64,000 nucleotides of DNA, taken from the IMG/VR virus record IMGVR_UViG_3300023049_000005, positions 124,001 through 188,000 of that record. One strand, 5' to 3'. Shown in pieces: positions 4,494 through 47,000 of the stretch. The position numbers and the translations under genes were made by a program. Under the pieces are notes generated by a model. It was not told the origin of the DNA. It did not search any database and saw nothing but the letters and a program-made list of their open reading frames with translations. The first letter of the stretch is position 1; every line of letters starts with the position of its first letter.

Positions 4494-5221
4494 TACTTTA
4501 AATAATTTCTAATAAACTTTATAACACTAGAATTAATCCCTCTGAATGTCATTGGTTTTTCAGACTTTTGTTTAGCTTTAATATCATATTGTCTAAGTAG
4601 ATCAGCTACTTCATCTTCGTGTAAATATATATCTTCAACAGGATCATATATAGCATGAGGCATATCAATACCAAGACCCTTTTGTTTAAATGGTAAATTA
4701 GGATCAGTTTTATCTCCCTTTTCACCGAAATGTCCTCTTACTCCTTTAGATGGGTTTCCATAATTTACTCCCCAATTACCAACGTGCGCACCTTGTCCAT
4801 AACCAGGGGCATTTACGTCACCACTATCAGGTGTTTGGTGATTAGATTCTTTAATTGATTCATAAAAATCTAAATCTACTTTAGTAGCTAATTCATAATC
4901 ATAATAAAACATATCACTTAGGCTTTTAGATAAACCTTCTTTTAAAATATTCTTATCTCCTTGTAGTAAGAACACCTCAACTTCTACATTATCTTCATCA
5001 ATTTCATTGACTTTTATTTTAAATAAATGCTTATTTAGATCTTCGTCTATGAAAGAAAAATCACCTCTGAATCCTACATACTCTTTTTCGAATAATGATT
5101 CAACAGCAGTTTCTCTGTTCATTGTTGTTAATTCACCTTCACTGTCACTCACTTTGAATATCAGTTTGAAGTCAGCTTTGTTACCACTGTTAAAGTTTTC
5201 GTATAGTTTTAAATATTTCAT
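4490..5221 (-). CDS. Hypothetical, probably virion internal protein
   Basis: N-terminal MKYLKLYENF motif; late-type promoter upstream. Confidence 0.6.
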   Translation of the reverse strand: MKYLKLYENFNSGNKADFKLIFKVSDSEGELTTMNRETAVESLFEKEYVGFRGDFSFIDEDLNKHLFKIKVNEIDEDNVEVEVFLLQGDKNILKEGLSKSLSDMFYYDYELATKVDLDFYESIKESNHQTPDSGDVNAPGYGQGAHVGNWGVNYGNPSKGVRGHFGEKGDKTDPNLPFKQKGLGIDMPHAIYDPVEDIYLHEDEVADLLRQYDIKAKQKSEKPMTFRGINSSVIKFIRNYLKY

Positions 5222-32652: not shown

Positions 32653-33346
32653 CAAAATAGAATTCCAAGTGTTTGGATCTAGTTCATCACAGGATCTAGA
32701 TTGTATGTGTTTCGTTGAACGCATCCCTTCTATTAAAGAGTCACATGAACTGTGTGAAAGATATGCTGAATATATCCAAGAAGTAACACAAACAGATAAA
32801 GAAATCAACACTAATATCTGTGTGGTGAAGGATAGAAGGGTAGTAGATACGTTTAAGGGAACTGCTGATGAAGTAAATAACTCCTTATATTTAACTAGAG
32901 ATCTTCATAGACAATATAATAGAAGTCCTATTGAGCGTTTAGTTGAAAGAGATGTAGAGCTTAAGATATTAAGAACAGCAAGAGTTCTTTTGTCTTTTTG
33001 GTCAAGATCAAAACATCGCCCTCTTGTTAAGAAAGCATTGAAGGGCGATATTTATGAAAAGATAGAAGCTATATCATCTATTGATATTACTGAGATAGAT
33101 TTCAATAAAAATATTAATCAGAAGGACTATCTTAAAACATTAGCTTTTCAACTAGGTCAAACAATCGGTCTAATAGAAGGAAAGGCATTCTATACTAAAG
33201 AAGGAATGTTGTCTCGCTTTTATGATCTTGAAAAATATTTAATGAGGGAAGAAGTAAATAGTTTATCTATTTTAGAGAATTATAAAAAAGAATTTATATC
33301 ATTGATAAAGGATAGAGATTTTAAAATCACAAGAGAACCAACATAA
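32645..33346 (+). CDS. Pol-beta superfamily nucleotidyltransferase-like protein
   Basis: N-terminal hGS..DxD motif 'VFGSSSSQDLD'. Confidence 0.5.
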   Translation: MTNKIEFQVFGSSSSQDLDCMCFVERIPSIKESHELCERYAEYIQEVTQTDKEINTNICVVKDRRVVDTFKGTADEVNNSLYLTRDLHRQYNRSPIERLVERDVELKILRTARVLLSFWSRSKHRPLVKKALKGDIYEKIEAISSIDITEIDFNKNINQKDYLKTLAFQLGQTIGLIEGKAFYTKEGMLSRFYDLEKYLMREEVNSLSILENYKKEFISLIKDRDFKITREPT

Positions 33347-33356
33347 TATATAAGCA

Positions 33357-33770
33357 ATGAAGCATATTAGATCAAGTAAGGTCAAGAAATTATTCAAGAC
33401 TGTAAAAAAGTATATTGAAGTATCTGATAATGCAGATAATCCAATATCTGAATATAGTAACGACAACGAGGATGTTCGAAACACTTTAATTAATCACATT
33501 ACTCAGGCAGAATTAGAAGACAGATATTTAGATAAATATAAAGAGGCAGAAGAAGACCTGTTAATTATCGATGAATTTTTGGATCTTGTTGATTTAGATA
33601 AATTAGAATCAGACAAGGAACAAGAAGTACTTCGAGTATATAATACATTAAGAGAAAAAAAGAATAGTATCCGAAATAAGAAACTACTAGCTAACATTGT
33701 TTTGGACATGAAATATACGTTCAGAGGTATATATCAATACAACAATGATCTAAAATCTTTGAAATTATAG
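33357..33770 (+). CDS. Hypothetical protein
   Basis: 137-aa ORF. Confidence 0.7.
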   Translation: MKHIRSSKVKKLFKTVKKYIEVSDNADNPISEYSNDNEDVRNTLINHITQAELEDRYLDKYKEAEEDLLIIDEFLDLVDLDKLESDKEQEVLRVYNTLREKKNSIRNKKLLANIVLDMKYTFRGIYQYNNDLKSLKL

Positions 33771-33823
33771 TAAACATTTTTCTTTTATAGACTATAAGGA
33801 ATAGAATTTTTTATATATAACCC

Positions 33824-33880
33824 ATGAAAACCTTAAACATAAGTACATTATTAAATAATTTATTATTACTTTTACGGTGA
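33824..33880 (+). CDS. Leu(UUA)-rich attenuator leader peptide MKTLNISTLLNNLLLLLR
   Basis: 18 codons, 8 Leu of which 7 are TTA; immediately followed by an antiterminator/terminator and tRNA-Leu(TAA). Confidence 0.8.
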   Translation: MKTLNISTLLNNLLLLLR

Positions 33881-33881
33881 T

Positions 33882-33946
33882 AAGAATTAGGATATGCACT
33901 TATGTGAAAACTAAACCTAATTCTTTAAAACGATTAGGTTTTTTTT
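33882..33946 (+). promoter_or_regulatory. Transcription attenuator (antiterminator/terminator) of tRNA-Leu(UAA)
   Basis: aagaattagg 33882-33891 is the perfect complement of cctaattctt 33916-33925, which overlaps the terminator 5' arm aaacctaatt 33913-33922 (3' arm gattaggttt 33932-33941, T8 run). Confidence 0.8.
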
Positions 33947-33958
33947 GTGTCTAAAAAT

Positions 33959-34043
33959 GGCTGAGTGGTGGAATTGGTAGACACGTTGGACTTAAAATCC
34001 AATGGGCATTGCGCCCGTGCGGGTTCGACTCCCGCCTCAGCTA
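33959..34043 (+). tRNA. tRNA-Leu (TAA)
   Basis: GGCTGAG/CTCAGCT acceptor, TTGGA-CT TAA AA-TCCAA, long variable arm, GGTTCGA T-loop; no encoded CCA. Confidence 0.95.
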
Positions 34044-34048
34044 CAAAT

Positions 34049-34080
34049 AAAAAAACTAAGACTACCCTTAGTTTTTTTTT
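34049..34080 (+). terminator. Putative terminator after tRNA-Leu
   Basis: aaaaaactaag-actacc-cttagtttttttt (AT-rich, weak stem). Confidence 0.6.
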
Positions 34081-34095
34081 AATAATATTAAAAAA

Positions 34096-34800
34096 ATGAA
34101 ACTAGTTAATAAAAATTACGAATTTGAAGATTTTTTAGCTATCGGTTATGATACAGTAGCTAACTGTAACCACGAGTGTGAGGAGTATGGTATATGTAGA
34201 TGTACTATTAAAAATAATGTTTGTTTTGATAAGTTTAATGATCTAGAATTAAAGGATCACATATTAGATTTATTATGTAAAGATCTTTCTAAAGAAGAGA
34301 AGAGAAATGTTTTTATTGATGATTTACTATGTAATGGAGTTAGTCAGATAAGAGAGTATTTTATCGATAGAGTATTGAAGATAAACAATTGTTATGATCC
34401 TGAAAATTGGGAGATAGAAGTTAGTGGGGGCTATTATGGAGAAGAAATTCATGGTGTTTATTTAAGTATATTAGATAGAGTAAATAGTGATTTAGGACAA
34501 TATACAGGAGATATTAATAAAGATATACCTTTCTTATTGGAGAGAGAGTATGGTGGGCTAAATCATAGGTTAGTAGGAAAAAAATGGAAGGAAGGTATTG
34601 TTAAAATGGATGATATAATTTTTCCACAAACCCAACATTATAATAAAGTAGATGGTAATCTTTATTATTATAAAGATGAATATTACCCATTCCCAAGAGG
34701 TGTGGTTTTGCAAGATGAAAAAAAATATAAAGTGATCGATGGGTATCACAGATTAAAAAATACAAACCAATCCAATGTAATTGTGTATATTTGTTATTAA
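34096..34800 (+). CDS. Protein with C-terminal ParB/Srx-like motif
   Basis: 'YKVIDGYHRL'; N-terminal Cys cluster. Confidence 0.55.
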   Translation: MKLVNKNYEFEDFLAIGYDTVANCNHECEEYGICRCTIKNNVCFDKFNDLELKDHILDLLCKDLSKEEKRNVFIDDLLCNGVSQIREYFIDRVLKINNCYDPENWEIEVSGGYYGEEIHGVYLSILDRVNSDLGQYTGDINKDIPFLLEREYGGLNHRLVGKKWKEGIVKMDDIIFPQTQHYNKVDGNLYYYKDEYYPFPRGVVLQDEKKYKVIDGYHRLKNTNQSNVIVYICY

Positions 34801-34801
34801 T

Positions 34802-34990
34802 ATGAAATTTGAATTAGATAAACATCAGTTAAAAGAAATTGATCAATGGAAACAAAAGATCAAAGAGAAACACGGTAAATATGGTCATTTCGATTATATT
34901 TTTACACCCTTTGGTGCAGGAACAGGTGTTAAAATTTATAGCCACTTAGAGAAAGAATATCTAGATGTAAGTGATACACAAGATTGGTAA
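34802..34990 (+). CDS. Hypothetical small protein
   Basis: MKFELD...YIFTPFGAG...LDVSDTQDW. Confidence 0.65.
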   Translation: MKFELDKHQLKEIDQWKQKIKEKHGKYGHFDYIFTPFGAGTGVKIYSHLEKEYLDVSDTQDW

Positions 34991-34991
34991 T

Positions 34992-36275
34992 ATGTATAAA
35001 GGCGAAGATAAATATATTTTGGTAATGTTGCCCTATCCTAGTGGTAGTGGATTACATGTTGGTCATTCCTATTGTTATGCTTTAATGGATAGTTACTGCA
35101 GATGGAAAAGGTATATGGGGGAATCTGTGTTCCAACCATTTGGTTATGATAGTTTTGGGTTGCCTGCTGAATTATATGCTGACAAAGTAGGTAGAGATCC
35201 AAAAGAAGTCACACAAGAAAACATAGAGAACTTTAGGAAACAGATGGATCATATGAATACCATGTTTGAGGAAAAATTGATCACATCCGATCCTTCTTAT
35301 CAAAAATGGAGTCAGTTCATATTCGATGTCATGAAAAAAAGTGGATTGGCTTATAAAAAATTTGGGGAAACTAGTTATTGTCCAAGTTGTAAAACTACAT
35401 TGGCGAATGCTCAAATAATAGATGATTATTGTGAACGTTGTTCCTCTAAAATAGAACAGACTGAATCAGAACAATGGTACTTTAAAATCACTGATTATAT
35501 CGATAGATTGGAAAAGAACTTAGATGAAATTGATTACCCATCTAAGACCATTAAGCAACAAAGACATTGGTTGCAGAATATGAGAGAGAATAATATCGAT
35601 TGGTGTGTTTCTAGACAAAGGAAATGGGGCTGTCCTATTCCGATTGAGGGGGAAGAAGATACCTTGGATACATTTGTTGATAGTAGTTTCTACTTCATTA
35701 GATATTGTGATCCTGATAATACAGAAGAAATTTGTAGTAAAGAAAACTTTAAACAAGTTGATTTATGTATAGGTGGTAACGAACATGCTTGCGCACATTT
35801 GGTATATGCTAGATTCATGATGATGGTATTATATGATAATGGTTATGTACCTGTTGAAGAACCCTTTAAGAAAGTTGTCCATAATGGGATGATTACTAAG
35901 GATGGTTATAAGATGTCTAAATCTAAAGGTAATGTTGTTGATCCAAATGATTATGACCCAAATGAATTGAGAATGTACTTGATGTTTATCGGTCCTTACA
36001 CACAGGGTGGTGATTGGGAAGATAGCAAGATCAAAGGCATCAGAAGGTTTATTGGTAGATGGGATAGATGGATGGAAACTGCCGAAGAAAACGGAGAAGG
36101 ATTAAATGATATTAATGAATTGGAAGAAACTATTGATGATTATATGAATAGTTGGAAATTCAATAAAGTTATTTCCTCATTGATGGAATACTATAATAAG
36201 AACAAGAACAATACTATTAGTACTGATAGTAAAGAGAAGTTGAATAAGATATATAATTGTTTTAAAACAAAGTAA
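34992..36275 (+). CDS. leuS: Minimal leucyl-tRNA synthetase (no CP1 editing domain)
   Basis: MLPYPSGSGLHVGH (HIGH), GYDSFGLPAE, Zn knuckle, QWYFKITDY, DWCVSRQRKWGCPIP, DTLDTFVDSS, GGNEHA..HL.YARF, KMSKS; about 427 aa from ATG 34992. Confidence 0.9.
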   Translation: MYKGEDKYILVMLPYPSGSGLHVGHSYCYALMDSYCRWKRYMGESVFQPFGYDSFGLPAELYADKVGRDPKEVTQENIENFRKQMDHMNTMFEEKLITSDPSYQKWSQFIFDVMKKSGLAYKKFGETSYCPSCKTTLANAQIIDDYCERCSSKIEQTESEQWYFKITDYIDRLEKNLDEIDYPSKTIKQQRHWLQNMRENNIDWCVSRQRKWGCPIPIEGEEDTLDTFVDSSFYFIRYCDPDNTEEICSKENFKQVDLCIGGNEHACAHLVYARFMMMVLYDNGYVPVEEPFKKVVHNGMITKDGYKMSKSKGNVVDPNDYDPNELRMYLMFIGPYTQGGDWEDSKIKGIRRFIGRWDRWMETAEENGEGLNDINELEETIDDYMNSWKFNKVISSLMEYYNKNKNNTISTDSKEKLNKIYNCFKTK

Positions 36276-36276
36276 T

Positions 36277-37206
36277 ATGAAAGAATATATTTTCGAAAAA
36301 GGGAAAAGGGTATATAAGTTAACCGATGAGGGTATCTTATATAATAAACTTAAAGTTAATCCGATAAAGAGAATAAATCGCTTCAAGAAAGTAAAGATAC
36401 CGAAGGTGAATCCTCATCAAATTGTTATCGGTGGTGGATCTTATAACAGGAAAGTGTTTTATTATGAATTATACCACGACACCAAATTAAAAGAAGGTGA
36501 AACAGTTAGATTCAAAAACAAAATAGGAGATTACTCTAAGTCTAACCTTTTACTTAAAATGATATCAGAAAATGATCCTCCTTATTTTAGAAATATAGAT
36601 AAAAAAATATACCACTATAACTACAAGAATATTTTAATAGGAATATATGACAGTCAATATAAAGCTAGTCTTGGAACAGGTATAAACCAATCTTGTATTT
36701 CACAACGTCTACGAGGTAAAATAAATACATCTAGGTTTGTGGATTATTCATATATGGTATATGATGGCGACGAATTATTAGACAGATATAGTGATTATAA
36801 CCAATCGGGCATAAACACTGTTGTCCAAATGGACTTAGATGGTAACGTGTTGAATAAATTTGGCAATGCAAAGGATGCCGCAGACATTTTCGAGTTAGGA
36901 ACGTGTGCAGAATCACATATTGTGAAATGTTGTAGGAAAAAGAGAGAAAAGGCTTATGGGTATAGGTGGTCATATTCTTGCGATTACAGAAAGAGAATGA
37001 AGAAAATGGTAGTTAAGTATAACAAAGATGGAGATCCTATTGCTATTTATAAGAATAGACAAGATGCTGTCAAGAATATGCCTATACTCAAATCATATTT
37101 ATCTTTAGTAATAAACGGTAAAATCAACCCTAAAAAATTTAGCATCAAAGAAGTTAGTTATGATGCGGGATTAAGTATAAGAAACAAATTGGTTGAGGAA
37201 GTTTAA
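36277..37206 (+). CDS. NUMOD1/IENR1-repeat protein, degenerate HNH homing-endonuclease-like
   Basis: Three 'V.QY..DG..I..F.S..DA' type repeats; HNH-like region lacks the His/Asn residues. Confidence 0.6.
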   Translation: MKEYIFEKGKRVYKLTDEGILYNKLKVNPIKRINRFKKVKIPKVNPHQIVIGGGSYNRKVFYYELYHDTKLKEGETVRFKNKIGDYSKSNLLLKMISENDPPYFRNIDKKIYHYNYKNILIGIYDSQYKASLGTGINQSCISQRLRGKINTSRFVDYSYMVYDGDELLDRYSDYNQSGINTVVQMDLDGNVLNKFGNAKDAADIFELGTCAESHIVKCCRKKREKAYGYRWSYSCDYRKRMKKMVVKYNKDGDPIAIYKNRQDAVKNMPILKSYLSLVINGKINPKKFSIKEVSYDAGLSIRNKLVEEV

Positions 37207-37216
37207 TATATACTCT

Positions 37217-37696
37217 ATGAAGTATATTAAAGAACAGAACGAATTTGTTTTAGAAAATAAGATAACCGACTTTTTTAAGAAGTTTAATATTAGTAAGATC
37301 AAAGAAGATTTGAAAGAAAAATTAGACATAGAAGAAAGCGATTCTAAGAAAGAGATCTTCATTAAATTAACAAAGAACTTACATGATAAGTCATTTGAAT
37401 TTATAGCAAATCATCTTTCTACGATAGTTGGTGGTGCTTTGGGAGCATTGTTAGGCGATTTGATTTCTTATATCTTAACTATATTTGCAGATATAAATAC
37501 TGTTGAACAATTGTTATTAATGTTAGCAGGTATGATATTTATGTTATATCGATCTAAAACAGGTATTGATAAATATGGATTAGGTCTTAGGTCTTTTACT
37601 AAGGATGAACCAATTAAGAGTCCTGACTACGATGAACTTTCGGACAAAGATGAAATAAGCGGAGTTCATTTCATTTCTAAATTTGGGAAAGAATAA
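37217..37696 (+). CDS. Hypothetical protein with hydrophobic segments, possible internal virion protein
   Basis: Start MKYIKEQNEFVLE just after a TAATATATA late-type box. Confidence 0.65.
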   Translation: MKYIKEQNEFVLENKITDFFKKFNISKIKEDLKEKLDIEESDSKKEIFIKLTKNLHDKSFEFIANHLSTIVGGALGALLGDLISYILTIFADINTVEQLLLMLAGMIFMLYRSKTGIDKYGLGLRSFTKDEPIKSPDYDELSDKDEISGVHFISKFGKE

Positions 37697-37729
37697 ATAA
37701 ACTTTAATTCCTTTCCACATATAATAATT

Positions 37730-37939
37730 ATGAAAATAAAAGGTTATACGTATAGTAAAGATGATGGGTCTTTCTATATCAGAGGACATGAAGATACAAT
37801 GGAGGTTCTGATCAGAAACGACAAGGGCGAAACAAGTAAGCTAGAAATACCCTCTAATGACTTTAATAACATTGTACGAGAAGTCAATTCTCAGATCATA
37901 GAAAAAGAAAGAGAAAATAAAATCAAAAAAAACTTGTAG
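37730..37939 (+). CDS. Hypothetical protein
   Basis: 69 aa, ends ERENKIKKNL. Confidence 0.65.
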   Translation: MKIKGYTYSKDDGSFYIRGHEDTMEVLIRNDKGETSKLEIPSNDFNNIVREVNSQIIEKERENKIKKNL

Positions 37940-37963
37940 ATTAAATAAACTTTATTATATTTG
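37934..37963 (+). promoter_or_regulatory. Bacteroidota sigma70-type promoter for the tRNA cluster leader
   Basis: TTG (37934-36), 19-nt spacer, TATATTTG (37956-63). Confidence 0.65.
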
Positions 37964-38010
37964 CAAACTATAAGACAAAAAGGAACATAAAAACTTTTAT
38001 ATATACTGAA

Positions 38011-38112
38011 ATGAAAAACTTAAATTTAAATATTAATCTGAATAATCTTAACACGTGTGTCATGAACATTACCGTGAATAGGAATGTTGGGTCAAAATTT
38101 AAAGTAAAGTAA
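38011..38112 (+). CDS. Multivalent attenuator leader peptide MKNLNLNINLNNLNTCVMNITVNRNVGSKFKVK
   Basis: 33 codons, 10 Asn; residues 3-23 are exclusively N/L/I/T/C/V/M. Confidence 0.8.
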   Translation: MKNLNLNINLNNLNTCVMNITVNRNVGSKFKVK

Positions 38113-38168
38113 AGTAATTTTACACTAAGAAATTTTTAAAACCCAACTTCAAAAGAGTTGGGTTTTTT
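38086..38168 (+). promoter_or_regulatory. Transcription attenuator of the tRNA cluster
   Basis: gttgggt 38086-92 (+aaaattt 38094-100) pairs with acccaac 38141-47 (+aaatttt 38130-36), competing with terminator aaaacccaactt 38138-49 / gagttgggtttt 38155-66 plus T-run. Confidence 0.8.
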
Positions 38169-38180
38169 GTTTTTATATAT

Positions 38181-38252
38181 GGACTGTTAGCTCAGAGACA
38201 GAGCAGATGGCTGTTAACCATCAGGTCGGGATCTCGGAATTCCCACAGTCCT
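38181..38252 (+). tRNA. tRNA-Asn (GTT), atypical T-arm
   Basis: GGACTGT/ACAGTCC acceptor; GATGG-CT GTT AA-CCATC; T-loop CTCGGAA; U discriminator. Confidence 0.75.
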
Positions 38253-38260
38253 CAAAATAT

Positions 38261-38334
38261 TCCTCAGTAGCTCAGTTGGTTAGAGCGTCTGACTGTTAAT
38301 CAGAATGTCGTTGGTTCGAATCCAACCTGAGGAG
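38261..38334 (+). tRNA. tRNA-Asn (GTT), canonical
   Basis: TCCTCAG/CTGAGGA, TCTGA-CT GTT AA-TCAGA, G73. Confidence 0.95.
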
Positions 38335-38344
38335 CTAGATATTT

Positions 38345-38426
38345 GCCTTCGTGGTGGAATTGATAGACACGCTAGATTTAGAATCTAGTTCCGTGAGGAG
38401 TGCAGGTTCAAGTCCTGTCGGGGGTA
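38345..38426 (+). tRNA. tRNA-Leu (TAG)
   Basis: CTAGA-TT TAG AA-TCTAG, variable arm. Confidence 0.92.
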
Positions 38427-38433
38427 CAAATAT

Positions 38434-38520
38434 TCTTGGGTTGCCGTAGTGGTCGAACGGTCCTGACTGTTAATCAGGTGAGTTAATACTCCATCGTAGG
38501 TTCAAATCCTACCCCAAGAG
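38434..38520 (+). tRNA. tRNA-Asn (GTT) with long variable arm
   Basis: TCTTGGG/CCCAAGA, CCTGA-CT GTT AA-TCAGG, 17-nt variable region. Confidence 0.85.
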
Positions 38521-38523
38521 CAT

Positions 38524-38607
38524 AGAGAAGTGGTGAAATGGGTAAACACAGGAGGATCAAAACCTCTCGCCTTTAGGGGCTTGCGAGTTCGAGTCTCGCC
38601 TTCTCTA
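38524..38607 (+). tRNA. tRNA-Leu (CAA)
   Basis: AGAGAAG/CTTCTCT, GGAGG-AT CAA AA-CCTCT. Confidence 0.88.
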
Positions 38608-38612
38608 CATAT

Positions 38613-38693
38613 TGGTAGGTACTCAGCCCATCCTGATAAGATGGAGAACTGTAATTGGTGTTGAAAATGTGGGTTCAAATCCCACTCTACCAA
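38613..38693 (+). tRNA. D-arm-less tRNA-Ile (GAT)-like RNA
   Basis: TGGTAGG/TCTACCA acceptor, 8-nt D-replacement loop, CCATC-CT GAT AA-GATGG, 24-nt variable region, GTGGG-TTCAAAT-CCCAC. Confidence 0.65.
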
Positions 38694-38698
38694 CATAT

Positions 38699-38773
38699 AG
38701 TCTAGTAGCTCAGTTGGTTTAGAGCGCAACGCTGATACCGTTGAGGTCGTAGGTTCAAGTCCTACCTAGACTA
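38699..38773 (+). tRNA. tRNA-Ile (GAT)
   Basis: AGTCTAG/CTAGACT, CAACG-CT GAT AC-CGTTG. Confidence 0.92.
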
Positions 38774-38783
38774 CAGATAAAAT

Positions 38784-38868
38784 GCTAATGTCGCATAGTT
38801 GGTCGATTGCACTCCCCTTGTAAGGGAGAACTGAAAAGACATCGGGGGTTCGAATCCCTCCATTAGCT
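38784..38868 (+). tRNA. tRNA-Thr (TGT) with extended variable region
   Basis: GCTAATG/CATTAGC, CTCCC-CT TGT AA-GGGAG. Confidence 0.85.
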
Positions 38869-38876
38869 CAAAATAT

Positions 38877-38950
38877 AGCCTATTAGCTCAGGGGTTCAGA
38901 GCGTCTGTTTTACACGCAGAAAGTCGGTGGTTCGAATCCACCATAGGCTA
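38877..38950 (+). tRNA. tRNA-Val (TAC)
   Basis: AGCCTAT/ATAGGCT, TCTGT-TT TAC AC-GCAGA. Confidence 0.92.
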
Positions 38951-39057
38951 CTAATGGGGTAGGCACTTAAACGAGTACCTAAAAATAAAGCACCTATGGT
39001 GTGTTCGTTTAAGTTTGATAGGAATGTGGTGTTTGTCGTTCCTTGATAAGAAACTAT

Positions 39058-39131
39058 GCCGATGTAGCTCAGTTGGTCAGAGCAGTTGATTTGTAATCAA
39101 CGGGTCGGGGGTTCGAATCCCTCCATCGGCT
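39058..39131 (+). tRNA. tRNA-Thr (TGT), canonical
   Basis: GCCGATG/CATCGGC, GTTGA-TT TGT AA-TCAAC. Confidence 0.95.
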
Positions 39132-39139
39132 CAAATTAT

Positions 39140-39223
39140 ATCCCTATGGTGTAATTGGTGACATCCTTGTTTTACATGCAAGAGACGTGAAGTATAATCT
39201 TGGTTCGAGTCCAAGTAGGGATA
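39140..39223 (+). tRNA. tRNA-Val (TAC) with extended variable region
   Basis: ATCCCTA/TAGGGAT, CTTGT-TT TAC AT-GCAAG, 16-nt variable region. Confidence 0.82.
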
Positions 39224-39230
39224 CAAATAA

Positions 39231-39370
39231 GTGTGTGGTCTATATACCTTAATATGATCTAGATAGTATTAAGAAGAATTGGTTAGACAAAAACTGTGAA
39301 AAGTTATGTATATAGTCTAGGATAGATATATGAATTTAACAGGGCGTGAGTTCGATTCTCACCACATGCT
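39231..39370 (+). ncRNA. tRNA-like RNA (acceptor stem + T-arm, large non-tRNA core)
   Basis: GTGTGTG/CACATGC acceptor with G3:U70, GTGAG-TTCGATT-CTCAC T-arm, internal stems ctatatac/gtatatag and cttaatat/gtattaag. Confidence 0.55.
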
Positions 39371-39377
39371 CAAATAT

Positions 39378-39451
39378 TGCGAGGTAGCTTAGTGGTCTAA
39401 AGCACTTGAGTCATAACCAAGAGATCGAGGGTTCGAATCCCTCTCTCGCAA
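39378..39451 (+). tRNA. tRNA-Met (CAT)
   Basis: TGCGAGG/TCTCGCA, CAT anticodon, A.C mismatch closing the anticodon stem. Confidence 0.82.
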
Positions 39452-39464
39452 CTATATAGTATAT

Positions 39465-39550
39465 GTCGGTGTGACCTGAGTGGCGAAGGGTGTGGACTGC
39501 AAATCCATAGAACGAAAGTTCCATCGTAGGTTCGAGTCCTACCACCGACT
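39465..39550 (+). tRNA. tRNA-Cys (GCA) with long variable arm
   Basis: GTCGGTG/CACCGAC, GTGGA-CT GCA AA-TCCAT, gaac-gaaa-gttc variable stem, U73. Confidence 0.88.
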
Positions 39551-39620
39551 CTAAGTAGTATTATAGTACATTAAGTTATTTTTACTATATTTGTAAAAAT
39601 AAACCAACAAAACTTTCATT

Positions 39621-39893
39621 ATGTTATTTAATCCAAGTCTATTATATCCAACTATATTGTTGAGCCTAGTTTTTTTATCAATAGTTAAAATATTAGATAA
39701 AAAAGCCAATAAAGAAACTTTAACGGTCATATTATCTATGGTTAGTGGTTCTGTGTTTATGATGATTCTTACTATAAGTGTAGCTAGGTTCATTTTATTA
39801 AATGATATGTGGATAGTCCTAGTATATGGTATCGGAACAGGTATCAGTAAATATTTATATATCTATTTATGTAAAAAGTATAATATTAAATAA
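39621..39893 (+). CDS. Small membrane protein
   Basis: 90 aa, three hydrophobic segments. Confidence 0.65.
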   Translation: MLFNPSLLYPTILLSLVFLSIVKILDKKANKETLTVILSMVSGSVFMMILTISVARFILLNDMWIVLVYGIGTGISKYLYIYLCKKYNIK

Positions 39894-39929
39894 GTTTTAG
39901 TATATTTGTATTGATAAACAAATTAAAAC

Positions 39930-40003
39930 GGGCCCTTAGCTCAGTTGGTTAGAGCAACTGACTCATAATCAGTAGGTCGATGGTTCGAGTCCATCAGGGC
40001 CCA
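39930..40003 (+). tRNA. tRNA (CAT), likely Ile2 (lysidine) type
   Basis: GGGCCCT/AGGGCCC, ACTGA-CT CAT AA-TCAGT; own TATATTTG box at 39901. Confidence 0.9.
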
Positions 40004-40024
40004 CTTAACTAAAAACAAACAACT

Positions 40025-40453
40025 ATGAAAACTATTACAAAGATTTTTTTTATTATTATCTTTTTATTCTCACTTACTTCTAGTGTTTACTCACAAAGAG
40101 TAAAGAATGGAACTAAAATGGAAGCCTTATTAGAAATGGTCAAGACTGACTTAGATGTTAATAGTGAACAATGGGTACAATGTGATTGGCAAGAATCCTA
40201 TGCTACTATTGTACACAAAAGAGATAGTAATATGTTTATTGTATATGATAATGGGTTTATCAATACATACGATATAACAAAGACATATGATAAGAGAAAA
40301 GATGAAGATGGTGATATAACTAGAGAGTGGGACTGTGTTTCGGAAAATGGCGAAAGGGCTACTATAAAGCTAGTTATTTTAAAGTCTTTTAATAGAGAGA
40401 AACAACTTTATATAGAGCTACCTAACAAAAAAATTGCTTATCATTTAAAATAA
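40025..40453 (+). CDS. Secreted/periplasmic hypothetical protein
   Basis: Signal peptide ending VYS-Q (Gln at +1 is common in Bacteroidota). Confidence 0.65.
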   Translation: MKTITKIFFIIIFLFSLTSSVYSQRVKNGTKMEALLEMVKTDLDVNSEQWVQCDWQESYATIVHKRDSNMFIVYDNGFINTYDITKTYDKRKDEDGDITREWDCVSENGERATIKLVILKSFNREKQLYIELPNKKIAYHLK

Positions 40454-40459
40454 TTTATA

Positions 40460-40726
40460 TTGAAAACATTTGTAGAAAAATTTATTACAGAAGAAAGTAG
40501 AACTGAACTTGATTTGGATTATCCAAATTATGAAGGTGATGTTCACAATGAGGTAATGATACCTCACAGCAAATTGGATTGGGCAGAAGCACCATCGATG
40601 GATATTGATGAAGCAATAAAAATTATTTCTAATATGAAAGAGAAAGGTGCTAACCGAGTTTATTTTTCTGCACATAGTGACCATCATGGATATTATTTCT
40701 ATGGTACACAATTAAAAGAGATTTAA
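40460..40726 (+). CDS. Hypothetical protein
   Basis: 88-aa ORF, TTG start. Confidence 0.6.
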   Translation: MKTFVEKFITEESRTELDLDYPNYEGDVHNEVMIPHSKLDWAEAPSMDIDEAIKIISNMKEKGANRVYFSAHSDHHGYYFYGTQLKEI

Positions 40727-41004
40727 GATATTCAACAAGATGATCTATCGCAAATATTTATATATTTGAGGAAGCTCAAGACATCATTGCTTAAGGTAGG
40801 AGAGAGTTTAATAATAAAGGAGAAGTCATAAAATAGGAAAGATACCAAAGACTTCGTTGGTAGATGCCTTTATCTCTCGTTTGTACTACCGAGGATGCAA
40901 CTCAAACAGATCTAGTGGGTGAGCAACACTAAAATGATCGGGTATGAGGCTTAGATAAATGATAGAATAGAACAGAATCTTGGCTACAATCAGTTGAATT
41001 TATC
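40727..41004 (+). ncRNA. rnpB: Compact RNase P RNA (bacterial A-type catalytic core, no P18/P19)
   Basis: P1 attcaac/gttgaat; P2 tctatcg/tgataga; P3; GAGGAAG; P4 agc(t)caaga 40773-81 / tcttggct 40978-85 with bulged U; P5 catc/gatg(caa); P6 pseudoknot ttgctta/tgagcaa; P7; P15-17 with GGU; tagataaatg and acagaa conserved regions. Confidence 0.85.
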
Positions 41005-41058
41005 ACTTAGATTAGCAATATTTTTATATATACAATATAAAAATATTGTGATATCTAA

Positions 41059-44000
41059 ATGACTCAAAGTGGGATGATAAAGGGGAAACAGATTAATATT
41101 GAAAGTATTAATTTAATACCAAACGAAAGCCCTTTAGCTTTAACTTCTTTTACCGTATCTACGGCATCTACGACATTTAGTGGAAAACAGATTATCAATT
41201 TAGAGTATTTAAACGATCAATTAGATTTAAAGATTGATATTACTCAAATAAACGATAATGCTACTTCTTCTACTTCTTCGTTATGGAGTGCTGATAAGAT
41301 ATATACTGAGATAACAGGATTAAGTCAATCAATCGATTCTGTTAGTATAAGTATATCAAATATACTGAATGATTTTATCACGGGATCTACTACAGGGTGG
41401 AGTTCTGAGAAAATTGATGAAGAATTAATTACATTAGAGAATAGTGTTAATATTAAAATTGATTCAGTAAGCATAAGTGTTGCTAATTTACTAAATGATT
41501 CAATCACAGGATCAACAACGGGTTGGTCTTCTGAGAAGATTAATAATGAGCTTGATTTAAAACTCGATGACAGCCAATTAAATGATGCAGCAGCCACGTC
41601 ATCTACTACATCATTGTGGAGTGTGAATAAGATATATACTGAATTACAAGCCATCGAAGCTAATGATTTACAAATAAATGACAATGCTACAAGTTCTACA
41701 ACTTCATTATGGAGTGCTAATAAGATATACACAGAGATACAAGGACTAAGTTCATCTGTTGATGCTAGAATTGATATAATAAATATCAGTGTATCTAATA
41801 TTGAAGGTGATATCATAGGTCTAAGTAATTCAATTGATAGTTTAAGTGTAAGTGTAGCCGATAACACAGCTAACATCGATTCTGTTAGTATAAGTGTTGC
41901 TAATATCTTAAACGATGGTATCACAGGATCTACAACAGGGTGGAGTTCTGAGAAAATAAACAACGAGTTAGATCTTAAATTAGATGATAGTCAGCTAAAT
42001 GATAGTATAATAGGTACTCTTTCTTTATGGAGTAGTGATAAGATAAGCAGTGAAATACAAGGGTTAAGTTCTTCTGTAAATACTAGAATAGACACCGTAA
42101 GCGCAAGTGTGATCGGTTTAAGTCAATCGGTTGATTCTCTAAGTCAAAGTGTAGCTACTAATACTACAAACATCGATTCAGTTAGTATCAGTGTAGCCAA
42201 CCTACTTAATGATAGTATCACAGGTTCAATAACAGGATGGAGTTCTGAGAAAATTGATGAAGAATTAATTACATTAGAGAATAATATTAATAGTCAATTA
42301 GATCTTAAATTAGATGACAGTCAGTTAAATGATACTATAGTGGGTACTGATTCTTTATGGAGTAGTGATAAGATAGATAGTGAGATACAAGGATTAAGTT
42401 CCTCTGTTAACACTAGAATAGATACCGTAAGTGCTAGTGTCATTGGATTAAGTCAATCAGTTGATTCGATAAGTATCAGTGTTACTAACAATACTAGTAC
42501 TATTACGGGATTAAGTCAATCTATTGATGTGATAAATGTTACTATTTCTAATATAGAAGGTGATATTACAGGATTAAGTCAGTCAATTGACTCAGTAAGT
42601 ATTAGTGTAGCTAACCTTCTTAATGACTCAATAACAGGTTCTACAACAGGTTGGAGTTCTGAGAAAATTGATGAAGAATTAATTACATTAGAGAATAATA
42701 TCAATAGTCAATTAGATCTTAAATTAGATGTTAGTCAATTAAATGATGCGGCTGCAACAAGCTCAACTACTTCATTGTGGAGTGTGAATAAGATTTATAC
42801 TGAATTACAAGCTATTGAAGCTAATGATCTACAAATAAATGATGCTGTTACTGCAACAGATAGTGTTTGGAGTTCTAATAAGATAGACAACGAACTAGAT
42901 CTTAAAGTAGACAAAACACAAATAGACGATGGTGGTACAGGTACTACATCGTTGTGGAGTGTGGATAGACTGTTGACTGAATTCGAATTAAAACTAGATG
43001 TTAGTCAATTAAATGATAGTATTATATCAGCAACGGGTCTATGGAGTAGTGATAAGATAAGCAGTGAAATACAAGGATTAAGTTCTTCTGTAAATACTAG
43101 AATAGACACCGTAAGTGCAAGTGTGATCGGTTTAAGTCAATCAGTAGATTCATTAAGTCAAAGTGTTGCTACTAATACTACAAACATCGATTCAGTTAGT
43201 ATCAGTGTAGCTAATATACTTAATGATAGTGTTACAGGTTCAACAACAGGATGGTCATCAAATAAGATAGATAGTGAGTTAGATTTTAAATTAGACGACA
43301 CACAATTAAACGATGTTGTTATAGGAACAAACTCATTATGGAGTTCTGATAAAATTAACAGTGAGGTACAAGGTTTGAGTTCTTCTGTGTATGCTGAAAT
43401 AGATTCTGTAAGTATAAGTGTCGCCAATCTATTAAACGATAGTATCACAGGATCAACAACAGGTTGGACATCACAAAAAATTGATAGCGAATTAGATCTT
43501 AAGCTAGATGTTAGTCAATTAAATGATGCGGCTGCAACAAGTTCTACTACCTCTCTTTGGAGTGTGAATAAAATTTACAACGAATTACAAGCTATTGATG
43601 CAGACCATCTACAAATAAATGACAATGCTACAAGCTCTACAACTTCTGTTTGGAGTGGTAATAAAGTTTATACTGAAATACAAGGATTAAGTTCTTCTGT
43701 ATATGCCGAAATAGATTCTGTTAGTATTAGTGTGTCTAATCTTCTTAATGATAACATTACGGGATCAACAACGGGTTGGTCTTCTGAGAAAATTGATGAA
43801 GAATTAATTACATTAGAGAATAATATTAATATTAAAATTGATTCAGTAAGCATAAGTGTTGCTAATTTACTAAATGACAGTATTACGGGATCAACAACAG
43901 GTTGGTCTTCTGAGAAGATTAATAGTGAACTTGATTTAAAACTAGATGATAGTCAATTAAATGATGTTGCTGCAACAAGCTCTACTACATCACTATGGAG

Positions 44001-47000
44001 CGTTAATAAAATTTATACTGAATTACAAGCTATTGATGCTGATCATCTACAAATAAACGATAATGTAACAAGCTCTACTACATCAGTATGGAGTGGTAAT
44101 AAAGTTTACACAGAGATACAAGGATTAAGTTCTTCTGTTAACACTAGAATTGATACAGTGAGCGCAAGTGTTATAGGATTAAGCCAATCAGTAGATTCAT
44201 TAAGTGTGAGTGTTTTTAATAACACCACTACTATAACAGGATTAAGTCAGTCAATTGATTCAGTAAGTATTAGTGTAGCTAATTTATTGAACGATTCAAT
44301 TACAGGATCTACTACAGGATGGTCTTCACAAAAGATAAACGATGAACTTGATCTTAAACTAGATGATAGTCAGTTAAATGATAGTGCTGCTACTAGTTCT
44401 ACTACTTCTTTGTGGAGCGTGAACAAGATCTATAATGAATTAGAATTAAAGCTTGATGATAGCCAAATCAATGACGCTGCTACTAGTTCTACTACCTCAT
44501 TATGGAGTAGTGATAAACTATATACTGAATTCGAAAACAAACTTGATACAAGTTTAACTAATAGTTACATTTTCTTAGGGTCACCACAAAATGTAGCAAC
44601 TCCTACCGAAACTGAAAAAATTTATATAAGCAGTGTTAGTGATGTACCATTAACAGAAGAATACTTATTCTTAAATGGGAACACAGTTACATTAGCTCAG
44701 AAAATAGAAAGTAATTTCCAAATTGCCGAAAGAACACAACAAGGTTGGATGGTTAGTAAAAGAAATGTCAATGAAGAAGTTATATTTGATATAGACGTAT
44801 CTTCTGCTTCTCTATTTAATACTGCATCAAACGAACTAGATATAAGTAATTACACAGGGGTTGATTCCTTAAATATCATAGATAGTACAACATCATCTCC
44901 TATATCAATAACTATATCTTCAATATCAGGTCTAGAAAGTGGTTATAATATAAACTTACGTTTAGAAGGACAGGGATCTATAACATTTGAAAACACATCT
45001 GCAACAGCAGCTAGTGTGGGGGATTTAATTTTATTTAATGATGAGAATAGAACGATAGTGGGTGGAACATATTCACAGGGTATAAATATTAAGAATAAAA
45101 ATGGTGTCAATTTAGAAATAGACCCACAATTTGATATTATAATAGACCAAGTAAATAGTAATATCAACGATAGTACAACATCGTCTACTACATCAGTATG
45201 GAGTGCTAACAAGATTTACACAGAATTACGAGCTATTGATGCTGATCATCTACAAATAAACGATAATGCAACAAGCTCTACTACATCAGTATGGAGTGGT
45301 AATAAAGTTTACACAGAGATACAAGGATTAAGTCAATCGATAGACAGTGTGAGTATTAGTGTAGCTAATATCTTAAATGATAGCATTACAGGATCTACTA
45401 CGGGATGGAGTTCACAAAAGATAAATAATGAACTCGACCTAAAACTAGACGACACTCAGTTAAATGATAGTATAATAGGTACTGATTCTTTATGGAGCAG
45501 TGATAAAATAAATAGTGAAGTGCAAGGTTTGAGTTCTTCTGTGAATTCTAGAATAGATACTGTAAGTGCTAGTGTAATAGATAACACAAACACTATAATA
45601 GGTCTAAGTAGCTCTGTTGATTCTTTAAGCCTGAGTGTATTTAATAACACAACCGATATTACAGGATTAAGCAATTCAATAGACATTATTAATGTTACTA
45701 TCTCAAATATAGAAGGTGATATTATAGGACTGAGCAATTCTATCGATAGTGTTAGTATTAGTGTGTCTAACTTATTAAATGATAGTATAACTGGTTCAAC
45801 AACAGGTTGGACTTCACAAAAGATTAACAATGAGTTAGATCTTAAATTGGATGATAGTCAATTAAACGATGCTGCTGCTACAAGTAGTACTACATCATTA
45901 TGGAGTGTGAATAAGATATATACTGAATTACAAGCCATTGATGCTAACGATCTTCAAATAAATGATAATATAACAGCTACGGATAGTGTTTGGAGTTCTA
46001 ATAAGATAGATAGCGAAATACAAGGATTAAGCTCATCTGTAAATACTAGAATAGACACAGTGAGCGCAAGTGTGATTGGTTTATCCCAATCAGTAGATTC
46101 ATTAAGTGTGAGTGTATTTAATAACACTACTGATATTACAGGATTAAGTCAATCTATTGATTCTGTTAGTATAAGTGTTGCTAATATCTTAAACGATGGT
46201 ATCACAGGATCTACAACAGGGTGGAGTTCTAATAAGATAGACAGTGAACTTGATCTTAAACTAGATGTTAGTCAATTAAATGATAGTATAATAGGTACTC
46301 TTTCTTTATGGAGTTCAGATAAGACTAACACAGAGATACAGGGGTTAAGTTCTTCTGTAAATACTAGAATAGACACCGTAAGCGCAAGTGTGATCGGTTT
46401 AAGCCAATCAGTAGATTCATTAAGTCAAAGTGTTGCTACTAATACTACAAACATCGATTCAGTAAGCATAAGTGTAGCTAATATCTTAAATGATAGCATC
46501 ACAGGTTCTACTACGGGATGGAGTTCTGAAAAGATAGATAACGAACTTGATCTTAAACTTGATGATAGTCAATTAAATGATGCTGCTGCGACGAGCAGTA
46601 CAACTTCGCTATGGAGTGTGAATAAGATTTATACCGAGCTACAAACTATTGATGCTGATCATTTACAAATAAATGATAACGCAACAAGCTCTACTACATC
46701 AGTATGGAGTGGCAACAAAGTTTATACAGAGATACAGGGATTAAGCTCATCGGTATACGCTGAGATTGATTCAGTAAGCATAAGTGTATCTAATCTTCTT
46801 AATGATAGTATTATAGGTTCAACAACAGGATGGACTTCACAGAAGATAAGTGATGAACTTGATCTTAAACTAGACGACACTCAAATCAATGACACGGCTA
46901 CTAGTTCAACTACTTCTTTATGGAGTAGTGATAAATTATATACAGAATTCCAAGGTAAATTGGGTACAGGATTAACCGAGAGTTATATATTCTTAGGTTC

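Follow-up and report, generated by a model that had tools for sequence, protein, structure and literature searches.

The analysed window was a stretch of 64,000 nucleotides (positions 124,001 to 188,000) of the IMG/VR virus record IMGVR_UViG_3300023049_000005, from a phage genome of 270,756 bp with a GC content of 30%. On the + strand, the window contained a Bacteroidota-type promoter (37933–37963), a short leader ORF (38011–38112), a strong intrinsic terminator (38138–38177), and an array of 13 tRNAs beginning at 38181. The promoter was of the Bacteroidota sigma-A type and was composed of a CTTG element (–33-like, 37933–37936), a 19-nt spacer, and the –7 box TATATTTG (37956–37963). The 15-mer ACTTTATTATATTTG of this promoter occurred only twice in the genome, both on the + strand, here and before the leader of a tRNA-His unit, whereas its 14-mer had one further copy on the minus strand. 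The 5′ untranslated leader (37970–38010) contained the motifs ACTATAAG and CTTTTATATATA, which were shared with the His and Leu units of the same genome and with the G006 homologue (G006 is one of the other phage sequences compared below).

The leader ORF was composed of 33 codons with an ATG start and lay 47 nt after the –7 box, and the same arrangement of a short ORF in the 5′ leader held in 20 other units. Its sensor codons were located at roughly 38017–38085 (N x9–10, L x4, I x2, T x2, V x2–3, C, and M). Residues 3–23 used only N, L, I, T, C, V, and M, and 24 of 32 residues fell in the isotype set of the array, while codons 24–33 (R N V G S K F K V K) fell partly outside this set. The terminator was formed by a 12-bp stem with a 5-nt loop (38138–38166) followed by a T-tract extending to 38177. 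Its hairpin energy was –14.1 kcal/mol, and it was the stronger of the two + strand terminator-like sites found in 33000–41500. An antiterminator strand inside the ORF, TGTTGGGTC (38085–38093), repeated the 3′ arm of the terminator and paired with its 5′ arm at –11.3 kcal/mol (P = 0.005 against dinucleotide shuffles). In transcripts cut before the 3′ arm, the minimum-energy fold also included the AAAATTT extension (to 38100) that the earlier note had proposed.

The array encoded Asn x3, Leu x2, Ile x2, Thr x2, Val x2, Met, and Cys, as the earlier note had stated. Eleven of the genes were found by ARAGORN. The first gene, tRNA-Asn(GTT) (38181–38252), had an unusual T-arm (GGTCGGGATCTCGGAATTCC) and was found only by Rfam (RF00005, 46.8 bits), with the anticodon read from the sequence. 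It was followed by tRNA-Asn(GTT), Leu(TAG), Asn(GTT, 88 nt, long variable arm), and Leu(CAA) (38261–38608). A tRNA-like Ile(GAT) with a reduced D-arm and a long variable region (about 38612–38694) was read by eye only, from a 7-bp acceptor stem, an anticodon loop CTGATAA, and a canonical T-arm, and neither ARAGORN nor Rfam called it. The region 38699–39224 contained tRNA-Ile(GAT), Thr(TGT, long), Val(TAC), an unassigned stretch (38952–39057), Thr(TGT), and Val(TAC, long). A second stretch, 39225–39377, also remained unassigned, and the array ended with tRNA-Met(CAT) and tRNA-Cys(GCA, long) (39378–39551). The observation made in the earlier note, a leader whose residues 3–23 use the same seven amino acids as the downstream array, was thus confirmed. 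However, its statement that the codons match the isotypes exactly was slightly overstated at the codon level. The two TTA Leu codons of the leader cannot be read by the Leu tRNAs of the array (TAG and CAA), but can be read by a tRNA-Leu(TAA) at 33959, which has its own TTA-rich leader.

Taken alone, the composition of this leader was only modestly unusual. The binomial P against coding composition was 4e-5, but 1.6–2.2% of random 15–40-codon ORFs in this AT-rich genome matched the seven-isotype set as well. This value would be compatible with the view that the short ORFs are ordinary small genes or chance ORFs, the hairpins are ordinary terminators or insulators of upstream units, and the tRNAs are transcribed from their own promoters. 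A T-tract followed by G and a TATAT element, located between the terminator and the first tRNA, could also be taken in its favour, as could phage T5, which has many small ORFs among its tRNAs with no such relationship. A promoter downstream of the terminator had been named in the earlier note as a possible objection. Only 6–20 nt separated the terminator from the first tRNA, or from a tRNA-like element, in the units examined, and no TAnnTTTG box was located there, whereas such boxes preceded 9 of 14 leaders. This view was considered highly unlikely, because the correspondence was replicated in 21 units and the in-ORF antiterminators were significant and co-varied with their terminators, as described below.

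Within the same genome, four of the five tRNA transcription units were composed of a short ORF, a terminator, and then tRNAs, and the His, Lys/Phe, and Leu(TAA) units each had a cognate leader, a terminator, and an in-ORF antiterminator. The leader of the His unit had 3 His in 17 residues and was followed by 2 tRNA-His. The leader of the Lys/Phe unit had 10 Lys or Phe in 24 residues and was followed by 4 Lys and 2 Phe tRNAs. The Leu unit, the second such unit in the window, had an 18-codon leader (33824–33880, + strand) in which 7 of 8 Leu codons were TTA (P = 2e-5 at the codon level). It was followed by the antiterminator GAATTAGGA (33884–33892), the terminator (33913–33941 plus a T-tract, to 33949), and its only gene, tRNA-Leu(TAA) (33959–34044), which reads TTA. 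The binomial P values of the four units ranged from 4e-5 to 2e-3. Not every tRNA cluster had a leader, since none was found for the tRNA-Met at 39930 of the window or for the Asp/Gln/Pro cluster of G006.

Whether leader composition co-varies with the isotypes of the adjacent array at other loci was the comparative test proposed in the earlier note, and its outcome was strongly positive. Seventeen more units were found in nine other phages, including cultured Cellulophaga and Tenacibaculum phages. Cellulophaga phage phi4:1, with identical leaders in phi17:2, had three units, in one of which the motif QRLHLQELEQP preceded Pro, Glu, Gln, His, Leu, Leu, and Arg tRNAs. In phi10:1, WSYSCFSYSF preceded Tyr, Trp, Phe, Ser, and Cys tRNAs. 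Calle_1 and phi38:1 had three units each, and Tenacibaculum phage Gundel_1 had one. Two IMG/VR contigs, designated L024 and L009, had one unit each. The 32-codon leader of L024 covered all 12 ARAGORN-called isotypes of its array, and also Met, which was read by eye in a 13th tRNA called by Rfam only. Three further sequences, G006, G007, and G008, added seven more units, including YYY before 2 tRNA-Tyr and SSSRSS before Arg, Arg, and Ser tRNAs. The Fisher-combined P was 1e-28 for 14 units and 2e-12 for the 7 later units, although many of the units are homologous across phages and these values overstate independence. In a 14 x 14 cross-comparison, every leader scored best against its own array, or against its own set plus one or two isotypes.

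The correspondence extended to codons. Of 51 Leu, Arg, and Ser codons, 36 to 41 were decodable by a tRNA of the same unit, and in phi4:1, unit A paired CGT with Arg(ACG) while unit B paired AGA with Arg(TCT). The leaders also had predictive value for annotation. A gene annotated as 'tRNA-OTHER' in phi4:1 was Asn(GTT), as its Asn-rich leader implied. One small 'hypothetical protein' within these arrays (Phi4113_075) was a leader ORF, and another (Phi4113_076) was in fact a tRNA-Ser. Hidden tRNAs were likewise predicted from leaders in Calle_1 (Ala) and Gundel_1 (Tyr). The Calle_1 element aligned with tRNA-Ala and had an invariant TTTGCAA loop, but neither element was assigned cleanly by ARAGORN, and both are only suggestive. 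No rule linking codon order in the leader to tRNA order in the array held across units.

The alternative pairing was also conserved in position. The best complement to the 5′ arm of the terminator was significant in 10 of 14 units (Fisher P = 1e-11). In 9 of 14 units it ended within 17 nt of the stop codon, on either side, whereas in five units the best-scoring duplex lay further upstream (20–38 nt). The antiterminator was not significant in phi4:1 unit B or in the Arg/Ser unit of G007. A diverged homologue of the unit at 38011 (L045) retained the ORF and gained Arg codons together with Arg tRNAs. Its terminator stem was different, with a matching change in the in-ORF antiterminator (P = 0.001). 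The pairing co-varied in the G006 homologue.

Folding with and without ribosome masks had been suggested beforehand as a check. At equilibrium, the terminator won whatever the position of the ribosome, and these folds did not discriminate between states. They were replaced by folds of transcripts cut before the 3′ arm of the terminator. In such transcripts, the 5′ arm was paired when a ribosome sat on sensor codons and freed when the ribosome was near the end of the ORF, in 5 of 6 units, while L009 showed no change. In the seven-isotype unit, the pairing probability was 0.7 with the ribosome on sensor codons and 0.08–0.19 on codons 22–31, and the pairing was lost while codons 22–32 were being read. 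A ribosome parked exactly on the stop codon would not cover the GTTGGGT core, which lies 18–24 nt upstream. An anti-antiterminator (1:2) hairpin, which, like a pause hairpin, would give termination in the absence of translation, formed in the His unit, where the 5′-arm pairing was 0.12 without a ribosome. It was not evident in the seven-isotype unit (0.69), and the two observations together do not decide whether this element belongs to the system.

These results were best explained by ribosome-mediated (leader-peptide) transcription attenuation of tRNA genes, and this reading was considered likely. In this model, transcription would start at the Bacteroidota-type promoter, and the 33-codon leader would be translated as it is transcribed. 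If every codon is decoded promptly, the ribosome would move into the last ten codons and cover the GTTGGGT segment, the terminator hairpin would form, and transcription would stop 4–14 nt before the first tRNA. If the ribosome stalls on an Asn, Leu, Ile, Thr, Cys, Val, or Met codon because the matching charged tRNA is scarce, GTTGGGT would stay free and pair with the 5′ arm before the 3′ arm is transcribed, and the polymerase would read through into the array encoding those same tRNAs. The outcome would be an OR-gated negative feedback loop, in which a block of tRNAs is made when any one of them is limiting and synthesis stops once they are supplied. The analysis itself established the anatomy, the leader-to-array correspondence across 21 units, and the conserved position and co-variation of the alternative pairing, whereas translation of the leader, the kinetic competition between the two structures, and the nature of the shortage (codon-usage mismatch with the host, host anticodon nucleases, or host tRNA decay) are inferences. 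The interpretation given in the earlier note, that stalling for lack of a charged tRNA induces the replacement tRNAs, was supported by the comparative evidence. The dependence of read-through on leader translation and on cognate charged tRNA was not measured, as no RNA run held the locus, and which physiological signal is sensed (tRNA shortage, anticodon nucleases, or starvation) was not shown. The model relies on kinetic trapping, as do the classical attenuators, and polyvalent leaders with only one to three codons per isotype should give weaker stalls than the runs in hisL or pheL. Leader-peptide attenuation has been reported as likely in flavobacteria (PMC9723704).

Two other readings keep the same architecture. 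In the first, the signal would be amino-acid starvation or a general slowdown of translation, and the arrays would be switched on as part of a generic stress or timing programme. Attenuators report charged tRNA and cannot separate a lack of tRNA from a lack of amino acid, and in several units the antiterminator formed by default without a ribosome (0.69 in the seven-isotype unit and 0.68 in the Lys/Phe unit), so that any translation failure would induce them. However, starvation sensing would not need leaders partitioned by sub-array, whereas phi4:1, Calle_1, and this genome each had three or four separate leaders matched to their own tRNAs. The match extended to codon boxes such as CGT versus AGA and TCN versus AGY, and making more tRNA does not relieve an amino-acid shortage. 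This reading was considered unlikely. In the second, efficient translation would promote read-through, for example by melting the terminator or blocking Rho, in a positive feed-forward loop. Such a loop would also predict matching codons, and no expression data discriminate between the two directions. The stop codon, however, lay 18–49 nt (most often 25 nt) upstream of the terminator stem, too far for a terminating ribosome to melt it, and what the ribosome covers at the end of the ORF is the antiterminator strand, so completed translation favours termination. This reading was considered very unlikely.

The distribution of the feature was limited. Most of 25 diverse arrays retrieved through an odd T-arm motif had no leader-plus-terminator units, and the feature is therefore not universal among phage tRNA arrays. 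A blastn search of the locus against 50,697 phage records gave only tRNA-level similarity, and a neighbouring 167-aa protein had no relatives in IMG/VR. The Zn-ribbon protein located between the His and Lys/Phe units had two relatives at 55–60% identity, one of them in an 86%-complete 185-kb record. Neither contained any tRNA, so they gave no co-variation, but they showed that the tRNA units are insertions. Four lake-water DNA runs held the locus almost unchanged, with long pieces differing by 0–2 letters, so that population variation was uninformative. A broader and more tentative possibility, held at somewhat less than even likelihood, is that phages of Bacteroidota carry a modular, isotype-resolved sensor of tRNA demand. 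In this view, each leader lists the tRNAs of its own sub-array, and loss of any single host tRNA, through anticodon-nuclease defences, host tRNA decay during infection, or codon-usage mismatch, would trigger synthesis of the replacement block, which would be shut off once decoding recovers. The units would be mobile cassettes. Close relatives of this phage lack both the tRNAs and the leaders. The leaders could also be read as labels predicting the identity of cryptic or degenerate tRNA genes.

How phages regulate their tRNA genes is largely unknown, and the arrays are usually treated as constitutive cargo. A translation-coupled feedback switch would show that phages meter tRNA supply codon by codon, and would link phage tRNAs mechanistically to host tRNA-targeting defences and to codon-usage mismatch. 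It would extend leader-peptide attenuation to RNA genes as a new class of output and to a degree of multivalency not seen before, with up to 13 isotypes in about 25 codons. The proposed circuit is present in cultured, genetically approachable systems (Cellulophaga baltica with phi4:1, phi10:1, or phi38:1, and Tenacibaculum with Gundel_1), in which it can be tested directly, and the leaders offer compact codon-specific sensors for synthetic biology. Literature searches found no description of leader peptides upstream of tRNA genes.

Phage tRNA arrays have been viewed as codon-usage compensation or as a counter-defence against anticodon nucleases (T5 and PARIS, T4 and PrrC), and the idea that tRNA-targeting defences make phage tRNAs useful is current in the field (PMC12409363). 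The output here was likewise a block of phage tRNAs that replaces or supplements host tRNAs, but no sensing or feedback element was found described for such arrays, and the tRNA region of T5 showed no leader-plus-terminator units. T-box riboswitches are also transcription attenuators that read the state of one specific tRNA and control genes needed to supply charged tRNA. They bind uncharged tRNA directly through a specifier loop and a T-box sequence without translation, whereas the sensing element proposed for these units is a translated ORF. Covariance-model searches (cmscan) at E<=1 over 33000–41200 and at E<=0.01 over four other loci returned no leader family (His, Thr, Leu, Trp, or Phe), T-box, or Flavo-1 hit. 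The pheST leader (pheM) and the His leader upstream of hisS in bacilli (the latter described in PMC2965389) apply leader-peptide attenuation to a gene of the translation apparatus, so that the supply of charged tRNA feeds back on the machinery that produces it. Those systems are monovalent and regulate aminoacyl-tRNA synthetases, whereas here the tRNA genes themselves would be the output. In the ilvGMEDA leader (ilvL) and the thr leader, multivalent attenuators of enterobacterial amino-acid biosynthesis operons, a short ORF enriched in several regulatory amino acids is followed by an intrinsic terminator, an antiterminator strand is masked by a ribosome that finishes the ORF, and a stall on any of the regulatory codons gives read-through. 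The present units had no sequence or structure homology to them and differed in that the genes proposed to be regulated were tRNAs instead of biosynthetic enzymes, that up to 13 isotypes were listed in a single leader, often with one to three codons each, and that they were carried by phages of Bacteroidota with TAnnTTTG promoters and no Shine-Dalgarno sequence.

The virus record of which the window is part was 270,756 bp in length with 29.8% GC and was found in lake-water metagenomes. The promoter was of the Bacteroidota type and was composed of CTTG, a 19-nt spacer, and TATATTTG at 37956-37963. It was followed by a 47-nt A-rich 5' leader, a 33-codon ORF (38011-38112), a 25-nt spacer, and a 12-bp intrinsic terminator (38138-38166) with a T-tract, and the first tRNA started at 38181. 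The tRNA array extended to 39551. ARAGORN identified 11 tRNAs, and Rfam added Asn(GTT) at 38181-38252. A further Ile(GAT) gene with a long variable arm was read by eye at about 38612-38694, although it was called by neither tool. The isotypes were Asn x3, Leu x2, Ile x2, Thr x2, Val x2, Met, and Cys, and residues 3-23 of the ORF used only these seven amino acids. Thus, the arrangement described in the earlier note, a leader ORF using the amino acids of the downstream array, was confirmed. The segment TGTTGGGTC (38085-38093), located inside the ORF, repeated the 3' arm of the terminator and could pair with its 5' arm at -11.3 kcal/mol (P=0.005 against dinucleotide shuffles).

The first tRNA after the terminator in two units (38181-38252, and C1:72732-72803 in genome coordinates) carried an unusual T-arm, GGTCGGGATCTCGGAATTCC, which implies a 9-nt loop or a palindromic GGAATTCC. 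In addition, isotypes that are normally class I (Asn, Ile, Thr, Val, Cys, and Lys) occurred as pairs of one ordinary tRNA of about 75 nt and one of 85-89 nt with a long variable arm (38434-38521, 38612-38694, 38784-38869, 39140-39224, and 39465-39551, and C1:73357-73445 of the genome). The reason for this is not known, and decoys or nuclease-resistant variants are possibilities; an 89-nt Asn tRNA was also present in Cellulophaga phage phi4:1. Two stretches inside the array were unassigned. The stretch at 39225-39377 had a 10-bp acceptor-like stem and a canonical T-arm around an insert of about 70 nt, plus a weak match to the tmRNA 3' end, whereas that at 38952-39057 contained a 16-codon Val-rich ORF just upstream of the Thr and Val tRNAs, with no clear terminator. 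About 730 nt downstream of the last tRNA (tRNA-Met, 39930-40004), an intergenic stretch (40734-40995, + strand) matched the full length of the RNase P RNA model RF00373 with 38.6 bits (gathering cut-off 84) at E=1e-9, and the CR-I-like GAGGAAGCUC and CR-V-like ACAGAA...GGCUA motifs were aligned. This stretch may be a minimal phage-encoded RNase P RNA located next to its substrates. The tRNA region was followed by a 3,948-aa ORF (41059-52905, + strand) built of many near-identical repeats (for example ...GSTTGWSSEKI... and ...SLWSxxKIYTE...), which is probably a giant fibre or adhesin-like structural protein.

The composition of this leader alone was only moderately beyond chance, since Asn, Leu, and Ile are favoured by AT-rich DNA. 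Although the binomial P against coding composition was 4e-5, 1.6-2.2% of random 15-40-codon ORFs in this genome matched the seven-isotype set as well as the leader did. The case therefore rests on replication. The genome contained five tRNA transcription units with 22 Rfam tRNA hits in all, and four of the five shared the same anatomy. In the His unit, the same 15-mer (ACTTTATTATATTTG) as in the window drove an 18-codon ORF with three His codons, which ended in AAAGTAGAGGG, a repeat of the 3' arm of the following terminator, and two tRNA-His(GTG) came next. In the Lys/Phe unit, a small Zn-ribbon gene was followed by a 25-codon ORF with ten Lys or Phe codons, a terminator, four tRNA-Lys, and two tRNA-Phe. 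In the Leu unit (33824-33880 of the window), an 18-codon ORF with seven TTA codons was followed by a terminator and the single tRNA-Leu(TAA). The fourth was the seven-isotype unit. Each leader was enriched for its own isotypes (P from 4e-5 to 2e-3), and the in-ORF antiterminators had P values of 0.002, 0.005, 0.058, and 0.005. The fifth unit, tRNA-Met at 39930, had a promoter but no leader.

The earlier note had proposed, as a test of its reading, that leader composition should co-vary with the adjacent isotypes in related phages, and the same layout was found in other phages. The unusual T-arm, as an exact 20-mer, occurred in the tRNA arrays of 25 otherwise diverse IMG/VR contigs (loci L001-L025), and a mechanical scan of these for a terminator followed by a tRNA flagged two as unrelated examples. 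The contig L024 had a 32-codon leader containing every one of the 12 ARAGORN-called isotypes of its array, including Trp, Cys, His, and Tyr. Its Leu and Arg codons (CTA and CGT) matched the Leu(TAG) and Arg(ACG) tRNAs, and its Met codons matched a 13th tRNA, found by Rfam only, whose CAT anticodon was read by eye. The contig L009 had a nine-isotype leader.

Among cultured Bacteroidota phages, Cellulophaga phage phi4:1 (and phi17:2) divided its 25 tRNAs among three units, with leaders matching {P,E,Q,H,L,R}, {A,K,I,G,M,D,T,V,R}, and {Y,S,N,W,F}. In phi4:1 (KT962245.1; L026), one annotated 'hypothetical protein' (Phi4113_076, 4643-4744) overlapped what ARAGORN calls tRNA-Ser(TGA), and another (Phi4113_075, 2515-2634) was the leader ORF of unit B, annotated from an upstream TTG inside the promoter. 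Phage phi10:1 had WSYSCFSYSF before Tyr Trp Phe Ser Cys, Calle_1 and phi38:1 had three units each, and Tenacibaculum phage Gundel_1 had one. In unit iii of Calle_1 (L029, 4211-4231), leader codons 4-10 read R L L H Q E P, the exact reverse of the tRNA order Pro Glu Gln His Leu Leu Arg, if the fifth gene, an 83-84-nt tRNA called Gln(TTG) by ARAGORN and left undetermined in GenBank, is Leu as in phi4:1. This may be coincidence, as other units showed no consistent order rule. A second motif search added seven units in three contigs, including YYY before two tRNA-Tyr, SSSRSS before Arg Arg Ser, an Ala/Gly leader in a 26% GC genome, and a 13-isotype leader.

The Fisher-combined binomial P was 1e-28 for the first 14 units and 2e-12 for the seven later units. 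Many units are homologous between phages, so these values overstate independence, although at least nine distinct groupings of isotypes were represented. In a 14 x 14 matrix of leaders against isotype sets, every leader scored best on its own set, and in two cases the best set was its own plus one or two isotypes. A prediction from a leader was also borne out. The Asn-rich leader of phi4:1 unit C implied an Asn tRNA, and the gene annotated 'tRNA-OTHER' there was Asn(GTT) by ARAGORN. In contrast, the small ORFs among the tRNAs of T5, used as a control, showed no terminators and no match to the tRNAs, and most of the other, non-Bacteroidota-like arrays sampled also lacked the feature.

Sensing appeared to be tRNA-specific. 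Of the 51 Leu, Arg, and Ser codons in leaders, 36 (strict wobble) to 41 (four-way U34 wobble) could be read by a tRNA of the same unit. Unit A of phi4:1 paired CGT with Arg(ACG), while unit B paired AGA with Arg(TCT), and units carrying both Ser tRNAs used both TCN and AGY codons. The seven-isotype unit was imperfect in this respect, since its two TTA codons need the separately regulated tRNA-Leu(TAA).

In order to examine the alternative pairing, the best complement to the 5' arm of the terminator was determined in 14 units and was significant in 10 (Fisher P=1e-11). In 9 of the 14 it ended within 17 nt of the stop codon, on either side, whereas in the other five the best-scoring duplex was located 20-38 nt upstream of it. 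The distance from stop codon to terminator was 18-49 nt, most often 25. Folding with ribosome masking had been suggested in the earlier note as a check. At equilibrium the terminator always dominated, as it does in the classical attenuators. Therefore, transcripts cut just before the 3' arm of the terminator were folded with a 29-nt ribosome mask moved codon by codon along the ORF. In the His unit, the 5' arm was sequestered (0.78) while the ribosome was on the first two His codons, and was free (0.12) near the ORF end and also without any ribosome, because a 1:2 hairpin formed, which is the full trp/his logic. In the seven-isotype unit, pairing was about 0.7 up to codon 20 and 0.08-0.19 with the ribosome on codons 22-31. 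Five of the six units tested changed in the predicted direction.

The strongest support specific to this locus was a diverged homologue (L045, from the 95-kb contig G006 of 26% GC), with about 75% identity across the aligned leader. Loss of the ORF from homologous loci had been named as grounds for rejecting the attenuator reading, but L045 kept a 36-codon ORF rich in N, L, T, V, I, C, and M. It carried four Arg codons, and its array contained two tRNA-Arg. Its terminator stem had a different sequence, and the in-ORF segment (ACTGAGGGTTG) had changed to match it (P=0.001). An HNH homing-endonuclease-like ORF (L045 845-1530) was inserted between the second Asn tRNA and the rest of this array, and HNH genes also interrupted the arrays of T5 and Gundel_1. 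Close relatives of the phage lacked both the tRNAs and the leaders, and the units therefore behave as acquired cassettes.

These results support the interpretation in the earlier note that the leader is a ribosome-dependent attenuator of the tRNA array. The most economical function is negative feedback on tRNA supply, in which a stall at any codon served by the downstream tRNAs induces them and restored decoding re-establishes termination. The anatomy, the correspondence of leaders with their arrays, and the co-varying pairing were observed in the sequences, whereas this function is inferred from a kinetic model without expression data, sensor codons per isotype are few, and some units are imperfect. 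The shortage that matters in nature is likewise an inference, with codon-usage mismatch, host anticodon nucleases, and tRNA decay during infection as candidates. Leader-peptide attenuation is reported as likely in flavobacteria (PMC9723704), so the host machinery should be compatible.

Full-text literature searches, which did not extend to subscription journals, found no description of leader peptides or attenuators upstream of tRNA genes, in phages or elsewhere. When compared with known systems, the anatomy fulfilled most of the structural criteria of a ribosome-mediated attenuator, although a 1:2 hairpin giving termination without translation was present in the His unit and not evident in the seven-isotype unit, but it did not belong to any Rfam leader family or to the T-box family. 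The mechanism class is known, whereas the output, tRNA genes, is new and the degree of multivalency is unprecedented.
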